Shown here: in pieces, positions 45,670 to 50,709 of the stretch | How the letters are laid out: each line of letters opens with the position of its first letter | How positions within the stretch are numbered: position 1 is the first letter of the stretch | Assembly: GCA_904063045.1 (NCBI GenBank) | Contig: CAJFCJ010000082.1 | Location: forward strand, 1 to 50,709 | Source: Dimorphilus gyrociliatus | Lineage: Eukaryota; Animalia; Annelida | Reading direction: 5' to 3' | Length of the DNA stretch: 50,709 nucleotides | The notes under the pieces: generated by a model | Databases searched by the model: none | What the model saw: the letters and a program-made list of their open reading frames with translations, nothing else | What the model was told of the DNA's origin: nothing | Made by a program: the position numbers and the translations under genes

Positions 45670-46305
45670 TTATCTCCATTTTGCACTATGTGCAAATTGA
45701 TAATAGTAGTTGATGATAGTACAATCCAATAGATACAAATTCACTATCAATAAAGATGATAGAACGCCTATACTACTCCCTTGAGCTTCTATATTAGCAG
45801 CGTTCCAGACATCAGACACTACTCTTCTCCTATTTTTCTTAATTGCTCTCACTACTGGAACGTATAACAATAGATTGATAATGGAATTTGGTACAACGGT
45901 CACGAATGACCAAAAGTACAGAAACGAAACAGGAAATACATTGGCAATTTCACATTCAACAGTAATATTCTCTTTCAAACCAGTCTCGTATAGATTCCAA
46001 CCCATAACTATGGGTTATGTAATTAGTGTCAAGATTAAAGATGACATTCCAACTGTCATAAAAACAAACTGGGTTAAAATGAGACAACCATAGAAATTGG
46101 TTTGTCTGCTTTTCAGAAGAAAATAAACTGATATGCCAATTGAGAAAAAAAAATCTGTACAAGTCATTGCAGTTACACCAAAATTATGTATTTTCTTTAT
46201 ATCTTTATTTATTATACGAATTACGATTAAATTACAGTTTAAAATCAAACCAACAAACTGATTAAAGTGCGTGAGCGATAATATAGCAATTTTAATAATA
46301 TTCAT
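45670..46305 (-). pseudogene. Rhodopsin-class GPCR pseudogene with an internal deletion
   Basis: TM1 GLILN, TM2 AMTCTDFFFSI, C in GCLILTQF and TM3 SSLILTLIT, then TAA in frame with PIVMGWN (end of TM4), ECEI (ECL2 Cys) and TM5 LLLYVPVV. The DRY motif, ICL2 and most of TM4 are missing. Confidence 0.75.
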
Positions 46306-47518: not shown

Positions 47519-50500
47519 CTGTGATAAAAAATCAATAAATCCTCATCATCTCTAGTGGATAGTATGATTTCCCTCACAATTGAGGCCAACAGTGAATTGT
47601 ACTCGAAATGAGACACTGTTGTTGAGATAAAATGGCAATATACCCTAATAACTTACTTCATTATCAATCTTAGCAATCAAATTGCTATTAGTCAAAAATT
47701 TTTGGTCAACAGGCTGAAGAGGAAAACTGTAAAGTGATTCTGAAAATAAAAAATAACATGAACTAGAGTCTGGGAGAAAATGGCCCATGTTTTCATTCTC
47801 TACCCTAACCCACAAACTACCCAGCTTCTTGCCCTTTATTCTTTCTAACCCTCAGCTCAGCCTTGAATGAACTTAAAAAGAGCTAAATTAAAATTTTCCC
47901 AACCTTGGAAATGTCCCAAAAATATTAAACTAAACTTTACTTGGTCTTTCTCTCCCTAACCAAAAAAAACTAACCCTGCTCTGTGAAAAAGTTCACAAAT
48001 GTTTTAGGACTTAATTCAATATCCTTATTATTCTCATTACTCTCAAGGCAATAGTAAAGAAAGTCATCACTCCACAATCGTTTTTCTTCAGATTCTGATT
48101 CTAAATAGAATTCCAAACTGGATCTAAAATTATTGATATTTGATATTTCTCTTTTAAACCTTAAAAAGCATTTTGCATCTGAAAATTATTGCATTAACTT
48201 TATATATTTGTTAAACATCAATTGTTTATTCATTTATTAAACTTACTGTTTTCAAATTTGTTAATTAAATCTTTAATGCTTGTTGTTATAGTATCCTGAA
48301 CAATGTCATTAGATTTTAATTCACAAAATAAACGAGTTTCAGAAATATTGTCTTTGAATTTTATCTTAAATCCACCATTTATTAATGAAACATTGCCTTT
48401 CTAAAATTATAATCTTTTTATTGAATAGTATGTTGTGTAATATATTTTTCATACCTGTTTTACTTCTAAATCTTTTCCTAGCTTGTAATAAATATATAAA
48501 TAATATTTATCTATTTCCTTTTCTAAATTTATATAATATGTCAGCCACACTTCATCACCTTTTTTCAACTTTTCCTCTATACCAGCATTGCAAAAGTGGT
48601 CAATTCTCATTTTAACTTTATTAAAAGAATATTCCAAAATGTTTACATTATCTGTTGTCTGAATTTTGTTCATAAAGTCAGTTTTGGAATTGTAATGCAA
48701 TATTGTGGTCATTTCCAGAGTTGGTTTATTATTTCCATGAAAGGTGACATTTTCAGGTTCACACAAAATAAAATTATGAAATAAAATTTCCTTTCCACTG
48801 TCATTCAAATTAACATTTTGTCTTATTGAAATGACTGTTATTTCATCAAAACTTTTCATTGGAAAAGACAATTTAGCATTGTCAATTTTTAAATCTATCT
48901 CTTTTCCAGTCCAGATCCAAGTGTCATATATTTTCTGATTATGTCTAAATCTGCTCTGTGGTTCAAATGAAAAATTCTCTTCATTCTTTCTTATACCATT
49001 GAGATTAAATTGTAGTGATATATTCAATTCATGATCAAGGTCTTCAACCAAGAAATTATCTTTAAAAACAAATCCTTTTAGTGTAAAGAATGTATTGAAT
49101 TTATTTTTGGATAAATTTAATTCTTTTCTTTTAATTATAAATTCAACTTCAGTATCTGGTTGTAAAGTTGGCTTTAACTTTTCCAAAAATATAATGTGTG
49201 ATGCAGAATTAATGCATTTAATATCTGATGTTATCAACAATTCAATTTGATTTACATTTTTGAAAGATTTTAATATTCTTAAACATAAGAAAAGAAAAGT
49301 TGGTTTATCTGATTGCTTTATAGGCCAATACCATTTTTTTGCGGTGTTTGCATATAAATCACTTGTTAACCTATCAGCTTCTATTAAGAAGTTACTACTT
49401 AAATCCCAATGAATGCCTAAATTATGTTTAAAGTATGGAATAGTTATCCAACCAATTTTTTTAGTATGTTTTAATGTGCTAAAAAACCTGACAGAAGTTT
49501 TCATTACTTCAATGCAAATGAAGCAATCTTTTGTTATAGCATTTTCTTTCAAAACCAAATTTAAACCAACAAAAGTTTTAATTATTCTATCACTCTTCCT
49601 TAAATGAAGATATATTATCATTGAAGAATTAGACCAAATTACAAGTGGGTAAGCTCCTGTTCCTAATTTGCAGACATTATCATCCATAAACACTTTTCTA
49701 TTAATGTCATTAAAATAATCAATTGCTGTAGAAATTAAAAAAAATGACAATCAAAATTTACTAAACTTTCATTGAGAATTATATATTATACATTTTTTAC
49801 TAATCAAACAAAATAAATGAAAAAAATCATAGATACCTTTAGAGTCAAAGTATTTATACATTTTGTAAAGTATATTAAAATCTTCACTTGGTTTTGGACA
49901 ATCTTTTGTTGACCTAACAAATGAGATTGATCTACAACAAAAATGTTGCTTCATTAAATTCTTTATAACAGCTTTCCTATTATCAAATTCATATGTATTG
50001 TTAATGTTAAGTTTCGTCACTAAAAACTGTAAATGGATATTATGTCCCAGATCAAAATGGTCATTACCATTAAATGAAAATTCAAACAACCAAATTGAAT
50101 TCTTTTTGAAAAATTCATTCATATTTTTGAATATTGAATTTACATCACACAATTCAAACTTATTCCCTTGGAGGTTCACTATCTCAAGATTAGGGTTGCT
50201 CTTCATTGCATCAATAACTAAAATTCCAACTTCATGACTGAATGAACATTGAGGGAAATATAAGACTCTTAATTTCAAACAATTTCTCTTAATACTCTGA
50301 AATATATCTTTGGCCATACGTGATCCAAAACTATTGAATCCTAGGTATAATTCTTCCAGATTTGAATTAAAACCAATAACTTGATCACTTGATGATTCGT
50401 TATCTTTAAAAGAACAGTTTGAAAAATTTAGTACTTTTAATGAAAGACAGTGATACTGAAGATTTATAAATAATAAATTCCCAACAGTGGAACCAAAACT

Positions 50501-50709
50501 ATTATTAGATAATGATAATTCTTCAATATATGAACTTTTTCGAATTGCATCACCAACAATATCACCAATACTTTCATCAAAACCACAATTTGATAAATTC
50601 AAAATTCTTAAATTAGAATAACTTTGAGAAATACTGTCAAAAATTCTTTGACCAACTTTTGAACCAAATTTATTGTCTTGTAAATATAATTCTTGAAGAT
50701 ATGAACTTT
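46754..50709 (-). CDS. LRR - ZU5/UPA (FIIND/PIDD-like) - caspase fusion protein, 5'-partial. Exons: >50709-49837, 49725-48455, 48400-48247, 48178-47975, 47739-47657, 47518-47137, 47085-46754
   Basis: All six introns are GT-AG and the splice phases match (1,0,1,1,0,1), giving about 1,098 codons without a stop up to TGA at 46754. RI-type LRRs (LQELYLQDNKFG, LEELYLGFNSFG); ZU5-like AKLSFPMKSF..ITVISI..FILCEPENVTF..IDHFC; caspase p20 ILAHG and KPKIFLTQCCRG; p10 DIF..STIPDRAAWRTDKGSIFI..QIP..KDYFFFP. Confidence 0.85.

Follow-up and report, generated by a model that had tools for sequence, protein, structure and literature searches.

A His-Phe-Cys motif at a predicted self-cleavage position in a ZU5-fold domain of a Dimorphilus gyrociliatus caspase gene

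PIDD1, NLRP1 and CARD8 are armed by autoproteolysis of a ZU5-UPA module. In the window (the whole 50,709-nt stretch of Dimorphilus gyrociliatus contig CAJFCJ010000082.1 that was analysed), a minus-strand gene encodes His-Phe-Cys (HFC) at what a first-pass annotation took for the end of a ZU5 domain, where His-Phe-Ser would be expected. This raises the question of whether the domain is an autoproteolytic module of the same type, with Cys in place of Ser as its nucleophile.

The gene, its transcript and the His-Phe-Cys site

The host gene is AT-rich and intron-bearing, and is composed of seven exons with GT-AG introns. Its 5′ end lies beyond the window, upstream of the LRR exon, and 1098 residues fall within the window. 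The exons and the site, which lies in the 424-residue exon, are as follows.

50707-49837, minus strand: LRR exon (Pfam LRR_1, E 7.9e-11, LRR_6 and LRR_4; joint 49725/49837 in a spliced contig)
49725-48455, minus strand: 424-residue ZU5/UPA exon (gene model and spliced contigs)
48598-48590, minus strand: HFC (P2-P1-P1′) with the predicted scissile bond Phe/Cys (codons, family conservation and structural alignments)
48400-48247, minus strand: exon 3, within the putative UPA(2) (gene model and spliced contigs)
48178-47975, minus strand: exon 4, within the putative UPA(2) (gene model and spliced contigs)
47739-47657, minus strand: short linker exon before the caspase (gene model; joints 47739/47975 and 47517/47656)
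47518-47137 and 47085-46754 (stop included), minus strand: caspase exons (Pfam Peptidase_C14; intron confirmed by contigs)

A Pfam search of the protein encoded in the window assigned LRRs to the first exon and Peptidase_C14 to the sixth (E 2.7e-12). Both caspase catalytic residues are present: the His in AHG (47281-47273) and the Cys in QCCRG (47149-47084, spanning the intron).

HFC is encoded by CAC TTT TGC at 48598-48590, with TGC at 48592-48590, in the minus-strand context AAA ATG AGA ATT GAC CAC TTT TGC AAT GCT GGT (KMRIDHFCNAG). It is embedded in KVKMRIDHFCNAGIEEK, and an uncleaved chain would read RIDHFCNAGIEEK across the predicted Phe/Cys bond. The three residues are His377-Phe378-Cys379 of the exon and H667, F668 and Cys669 of the gene model. 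The span that had been claimed for the ZU5 domain, 48575-48925, corresponds to exon residues 268-384 and matches almost exactly the second of the ZU5-fold domains that AlphaFold modelled (262-388).

All six predicted introns, each CT..AC on the plus strand, are exactly skipped by contigs of runs X2 and X3 from two studies, while contigs of the genomic run X1 retain them. This skipping, as modelled, reveals that the gene is transcribed and spliced and that the Cys codon is present in the transcript. The spliced contigs of the two studies cover 48455-49725 with zero differences, TGC codon included. The placement of HFC within the claimed ZU5 span in the first-pass annotation is thus verified by the codons and by these contigs. 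The fragment that it had predicted from CNAGI, with a UPA-like start and running through the caspase, is likewise continuous on one verified transcript.

The contigs also revealed further features of the locus. X2 and X3 each contain a 294-nt contig (47711-48004) that reads through the intron 47740-47974, indicating that an intron-retaining transcript form coexists with the spliced form. In the LRR exon, the joint of an X3 contig at 50237-50296 omits 58 nt (CT..AC), where the X2 contig is continuous; the skipped segment may be an alternative, frame-shifting intron. Across 50452-50709, all four runs show a 10- to 40-fold increase in summed contig depth, along with several variant letters, implying that the LRR-coding unit is multi-copy in both genome and transcriptome. 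Just downstream of the caspase gene, the minus-strand ORFs at 45670-46305 are hydrophobic-rich and resemble pieces of a multi-pass membrane protein. In tblastx comparisons, these ORFs did not resemble the 7tm_1 gene that follows the homologue at locus L001, and the downstream region showed no synteny with that locus.

Fold of the 424-residue exon and position of the site

AlphaFold2 models of the exon were built from its alignment with 14 distant homologues. The whole-exon model (m84eb32d23618) has a pLDDT of 82.5 and a pTM of 0.82, and a separate domain model of exon residues 255-424 (md385ee8b7f18) has a pLDDT of 85.6. The structural search was performed with VIA-align against 48,161 PDB representatives. 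The top matches of the exon model were ankyrin-B ZU5-ZU5-UPA (Z 10.7) and ankyrin-R ZU5A-ZU5B (3ud1, Z 10.1). The same search aligned model residues 47-261 with the rat NLRP1 FIIND (7crv_B, Z 9.0), 23-260 with the CARD8 FIIND (7jkq_B, Z 8.9), 115-254 with the NLRP1 UPA (6x6a_G, Z 7.6), 265-387 with ZU5-ANK (Z 8.2) and 265-417 with UNC5b (Z 7.4, rmsd 2.5); ZO-1 ZU5 matched at Z 7.0.

For the domain model, all of the eight best structural rows were ZU5 domains. They include the AnkB ZU5 4d8o (Z 11.2, rmsd 2.9 over 116 residues), ankyrin-R 3ud2 (Z 10.4), UNC5b 3g5b (Z 8.7 over 153 residues), 3f59 (Z 8.8) and ZO-1 2kxs (Z 8.0). GAIN domains (Z 5.4-8.3) and Nup116 (Z 5.1) followed, and the neighbours of the fold in the ESM Atlas are ZU5 and Ankyrin-3 clusters (TM 0.55-0.59). 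In the models, therefore, the second domain of the exon has a ZU5 fold and superposes on solved ZU5 domains. Taken together, the structural matches resolve the exon into ZU5(1)-UPA(1)-ZU5(2), followed by the opening strands of another UPA:

49654-49322, minus strand: ZU5(1), beta sandwich, exon residues ~25-135 (m84eb32d23618; covered by the 7jkq_B, Z 8.9, and 3ud1, Z 10.1, alignments)
49303-48947, minus strand: UPA(1), UPA-like, exon residues ~142-260 (6x6a_G, Z 7.6; 7crv_B, Z 9.0, extending into ZU5(1))
48943-48593, minus strand: ZU5(2), exon residues 262-378, ending in His377-Phe378 (md385ee8b7f18 and the ZU5 structural matches)
48592-48455 with exon 3 (48400-48247) and exon 4 (48178-47975), minus strand: putative UPA(2), from Cys379 (partial model and exon borders)

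The first three strands of the putative UPA(2) (exon residues 381-416) were modelled, and ~120 further residues lie in other exons. These first strands align with the regions that follow ZU5 in UNC5b (to 728), rat NLRP1 (to 1018) and AnkG. In a MAFFT alignment with the homologues P0002 and P0004, the region after the site aligned poorly.

Upstream of the HFC-bearing domain, a complete ZU5-UPA module, missed in the first-pass annotation, occupies 49654-48947 on the minus strand (exon residues ~25-260). Of the two modules, it is the closer one to the FIIND structures of CARD8 and NLRP1 (Z ~9), and the family alignment A1 contains no conserved F-S/C cleavage motif at the end of its ZU5. Since this first module is complete, the protein has the predicted order ZU5-UPA-ZU5-UPA, which is not seen in PIDD1 or ankyrin. 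Comparisons of ZU5(1) with ZU5(2) and of UPA(1) with the putative UPA(2) by hhalign gave no signal (probabilities of 0.2%), so that the internal duplication is apparent in structure only.

At the sequence level, the fold is difficult to detect. Pfam gave zero matches to the 424-residue exon at E up to 1, and the ZU5 family (PF00791) scored 19.5 bits in the homologue P0001 and 17.2 bits in P0009, below its cut-off of 21 bits. FIIND (PF13553) was absent at E up to 1 from the window exon and from P0001, P0002, P0004, P0007, P0009 and P0010, and phmmer of the exon against PDB sequences returned no match. The family profile matched the C-x-P-x-G strand of the ZO-1 ZU5 (E 0.0067), a weak yet correctly placed sequence signal for ZU5. 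With the 424-residue multi-domain model, Foldseek returned nothing at E <= 0.001, and ZU5 entries appeared solely by high 'prob'; VIA-align and the single-domain model resolve this blank. The assignment of the HFC-bearing domain to ZU5 is thus borne out by the structural matches, although Pfam missed it.

We then located the predicted scissile bond on the fold. The Phe of HFC is residue 124 of the domain model, and seven alignments, to chains ending at P1 (cleaved GAIN fragments) or to the truncated ZO-1 ZU5, all stop at this Phe:

latrophilin-1, 4dlq, chain end 837: alignment stops at model residue 124
GPR110, 8hc0, chain end 566: alignment stops at model residue 124
GPR56, 5kvm, chain end 382: alignment stops at model residue 124
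GPR97, 7qu8, chain end 249: alignment stops at model residue 124
Gpr126, 6v55, chain end 827: alignment stops at model residue 124
latrophilin-3, 8vti, chain end 854: alignment stops at model residue 124
ZO-1, 2kxr, chain end 118: alignment stops at model residue 124

The chain ends of the GPR56, GPR110 and GPR97 structures correspond to their cleavage sites. For latrophilin-1 (CL1), the published cleavage site is L837/T838 (PMC3321182). With the uncleaved or single-chain targets BAI2, CD97, ankyrin, UNC5b and NLRP1, the alignment continues through the next strand. Rat NLRP1 (7crw_A, Z 6.2) aligns across HFC, with residues 12-170 of the domain model matching its residues 852-1018. The alignments that end at Phe identify Phe as P1, Cys as P1′ and AGIEEKL as the first UPA strand or GAIN Stachel, an equivalence read from the end points of the alignment ranges, not from superposed coordinates. 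By these end points, and with the rat NLRP1 alignment spanning the site, the motif falls where known scissile bonds lie in the fold. The proposal that HFC sits at a ZU5/UPA junction, in a position of the PIDD1 or NLRP1 type, accordingly holds: its Phe falls on the P1 of cleaved relatives.

Ser and Cys at the predicted nucleophile position

An exhaustive HMMER search yielded 14 cluster representatives (E 9e-21 to 9e-4, 23-37% identity), and a profile search of the homologue loci added one more member (at locus L005, with NFC). The census comprises 16 sequences from two or three genomes, at ~25% identity. P0002 (1962 aa) and P0004 (859 aa) are annotated D. gyrociliatus proteins, both of which continue into a caspase. 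The other traced homologues are ORFs from runs SRR23372216, 228, 229 and 231, several of them arranged in tandem or head to head and lying beside caspase ORFs. Caspase ORFs also adjoin other Cys-type members (L009 and L005). In a word-index protein search over a restricted length range and with a capped number of candidates, the exon had no match and the family profile matched P0007 only, blanks that are uninformative.

Two loci hold neighbouring copies. At L002:507-4677, P0014 (HFS) stands in tandem with P0011 (HFC), and at L005:138-7942, P0008 (HFC) is head to head with the NFC member, which has its own caspase ORF. Such arrangements indicate a locally duplicating gene family, whose neighbours differ at the predicted nucleophile.

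Alignment A1 contains 15 sequences and 312 columns, with a mean column identity of 30%. Only three of the 312 columns are invariant (C322, P324 and F378), and column 379, with Ser in nine sequences and Cys in six, is among the 12 that hold no more than two residue types. Across all 16 members, P1 is Phe without exception and P1′ is Ser in nine and Cys in seven; Ala, Gly and Thr are absent from P1′. At P2, ten members have His. The relatives therefore conserve, at the C-terminal end of ZU5, an aromatic P1 and a P1′ residue with a hydroxyl or thiol group. The check that the first-pass annotation had called for, whether homologues keep Ser, Thr or Cys at P1′, thus came out as Ser or Cys exclusively, without a single non-nucleophilic residue.

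In a maximum-likelihood tree of 15 members, whose terminal branches exceed one change per site, six interchanges of Ser and Cys are required, and at least four of these changes are forced by well-supported branches. The Ser and Cys labels are as scattered on the tree as shuffled labels. Ser is encoded by TCC or TCA and Cys by TGC or TGT, placing the two residues one transversion apart (TCY to TGY). Since P1′ is limited to two side chains capable of an acyl shift despite this divergence, we read it as a nucleophile and not as a packing residue.

A ZU5 fold whose site does not cleave, with Phe and a small Ser or Cys retained for the tight packing of the ZU5-UPA turn, is an unlikely explanation of this pattern. 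A steric constraint should admit Ala and Gly as well, and neither occurs in any of the 16 sequences at ~25% identity; moreover, Ser/Cys exchange is rare outside nucleophile positions, yet the family has undergone at least four swaps. In addition, the P1 residue of UNC5b is Leu, not Phe (PMC3210808). What speaks for such a site is that the ZU5 domains heading the structural matches do not cleave, that Pfam FIIND was not matched and that the His at P2 is unconserved, with 6 of the 16 members carrying G, N, K or S there.

The protein contains a further HFC tripeptide, encoded at 49945-49937 on the minus strand (LMKQHFCCRSISF) between the LRRs and ZU5(1). Its conservation is not visible in P0001 or P0002, and it probably arose by chance. 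The tripeptide by itself consequently proves nothing, and the second copy would fit the notion that the HFC of ZU5(2) is also a chance occurrence in a decaying or mis-assembled gene. This notion is hardly credible, and is refuted as far as sequence data can refute it, by the frame that stays open through seven exons, by the GT-AG introns that contigs of two studies confirm with no differences at the site, and by the conservation of the column across the family.

A predicted Cys-dependent self-cleavage and its relatives

We consider it reasonably probable that ZU5(2) is a cis-autoproteolytic module of the PIDD1/NLRP1/CARD8 type, with Cys379 (model residue 669) as the nucleophile in place of Ser. 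Folding would bury Phe378 in the beta sandwich and strain the Phe-Cys bond. The thiol, deprotonated by His377 or another base, would attack the Phe carbonyl, and the resulting N-to-S acyl shift would produce a thioester that is hydrolysed by water. The N-terminal product would be LRR-ZU5-UPA-ZU5, ending in RIDHF, and the C-terminal product would consist of 430 residues from CNAGI, comprising the UPA and the caspase. With the first UPA strand supplying the strand that completes the ZU5 sandwich, the two products would stay together, and by analogy with NLRP1, CARD8 and PIDD1 they would remain associated until the N-terminal piece is removed. Its loss or degradation would leave the UPA-caspase fragment free to oligomerise and to be activated by proximity, allowing caspase activation without a CARD or a death-domain adaptor.

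PIDD1, an LRR-ZU5-ZU5-UPA-death domain protein that self-cleaves at HF/S446 and HF/S588, shares with the present protein the upstream LRRs, the tandem ZU5-type modules, the H-F-nucleophile motif at the end of ZU5 and, as predicted here, a caspase-activating fragment as the output. In contrast to PIDD1, the present protein would use Cys instead of Ser, has the predicted order ZU5-UPA-ZU5-UPA with a single motif-bearing site, and is fused to its caspase, whereas the death domain of PIDD1 recruits RAIDD and caspase-2. Sequence similarity to PIDD1 was undetectable by Pfam and by phmmer against PDB sequences.

The FIIND of NLRP1 and CARD8, a ZU5-UPA unit with autoproteolysis at SF/S, resembles the present module in fold (7crw_A over the site, Z 6.2; 7jkq_B and 7crv_B to the first module, Z ~9), in the buried Phe at P1, in the variable P2 and in a predicted C-terminal fragment that starts with UPA and carries a death effector. 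The P2 residue of CARD8 and NLRP1 is Ser, and its mutation barely affects cleavage (PMC3210808). The present protein differs from both in the Cys at P1′, in the putative UPA joined straight to a caspase and not to a CARD, in the additional motif-less ZU5-UPA module upstream and in the unmatched Pfam FIIND. Neither the window nor P0002 showed a NACHT domain.

The GPS sites of GAIN domains in adhesion GPCRs and PKD1 (HL/T, HL/S and HL/C) and the HF/S site of Nup98/Nup116 provide a further comparison, with fold matches at Z 5-8.3. The N-terminal fragments of cleaved GAIN domains end where the Phe of HFC lies, and the strand that comes next corresponds to the Stachel. Unlike GAIN, the present domain has no GPS disulfides and no subdomain A, and its context is of a cytosolic type; at P1 it shares Phe with ZU5 and Nup98, where GAIN has Leu. 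Liao et al. (2014), cited in PMC11697300, reportedly treat GAIN, ZU5 and Nup98 as one autoproteolytic superfamily. The GAIN and Nup98 structural matches are to be expected, given that the three domains have been described as such a superfamily (PMC3482391). The closest structures, the ZU5 domains of ankyrin, UNC5 and ZO-1 (Z 8-11.2), have the C-x-P-x-G strand motif in common with the present domain, but lack the H-F-S/C motif and, like most known ZU5 domains, do not cleave.

The Ser-type paralogues could be the only members that cleave themselves, the Cys-type forms, including the present gene, being slow, redox-gated or dead, and serving as uncleaved regulators or decoys. Ser-to-Cys swaps often slow other cis-autoproteolytic proteins, and this background counts for such an impairment, as does the fact that the documented nucleophile in PIDD1, NLRP1 and CARD8 is Ser only. 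Indeed, Ser alone has been demonstrated as the nucleophile among the ZU5-UPA death-signalling proteins, although Cys is well known in general as a cis-autoproteolytic nucleophile (PMC3210808). We nevertheless hold an impaired Cys type to be rather unlikely. Cys forms have appeared several times in the family and have been retained, with Phe, His and the caspase ORFs downstream all intact, and the gene in the window is transcribed and correctly spliced. Furthermore, cleavage at L/T, L/S or L/C has been described for the related GAIN domains, whose GPS sites thus include cases of Cys at P1′ (PMC3321182), a precedent missing from the first-pass annotation.

Less probable still is that the Ser/Cys alternation is a functional switch and not neutral drift, in which the Cys type would require a reducing cytosol for its cleavage through a thioester, and the lifetime of its caspase fragment with an N-terminal Cys would be tied to redox or oxygen. 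Animal proteins that begin with Cys are substrates of the Cys branch of the Arg/N-degron pathway, which depends on oxygen and NO. If this were true, a death signal would be coupled to the redox or oxygen state via the lifetime of the freed UPA-caspase, and the family would consist of self-cleaving sensor-caspases with two tunings.

In the literature that we searched, Cys at a ZU5-UPA site was not reported, and a 2024 survey of lophotrochozoan caspases leaves ZU5 unmentioned. On this literature, the Cys variant at this site would be new, whereas the mechanism itself is already known. On the reading that we favour, self-cleavage at Phe/Cys, the invertebrate family has a ZU5-UPA module directly before a caspase, and its predicted nucleophile has changed repeatedly between Ser and Cys, a natural mutagenesis series in support of the acyl-shift mechanism. 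A thiol nucleophile would permit trapping of the thioester intermediate, which is hard with the serine forms. Uniting sensor, switch and protease in a single chain, the family would provide a simple system for adaptor-free caspase activation by release of a UPA fragment.
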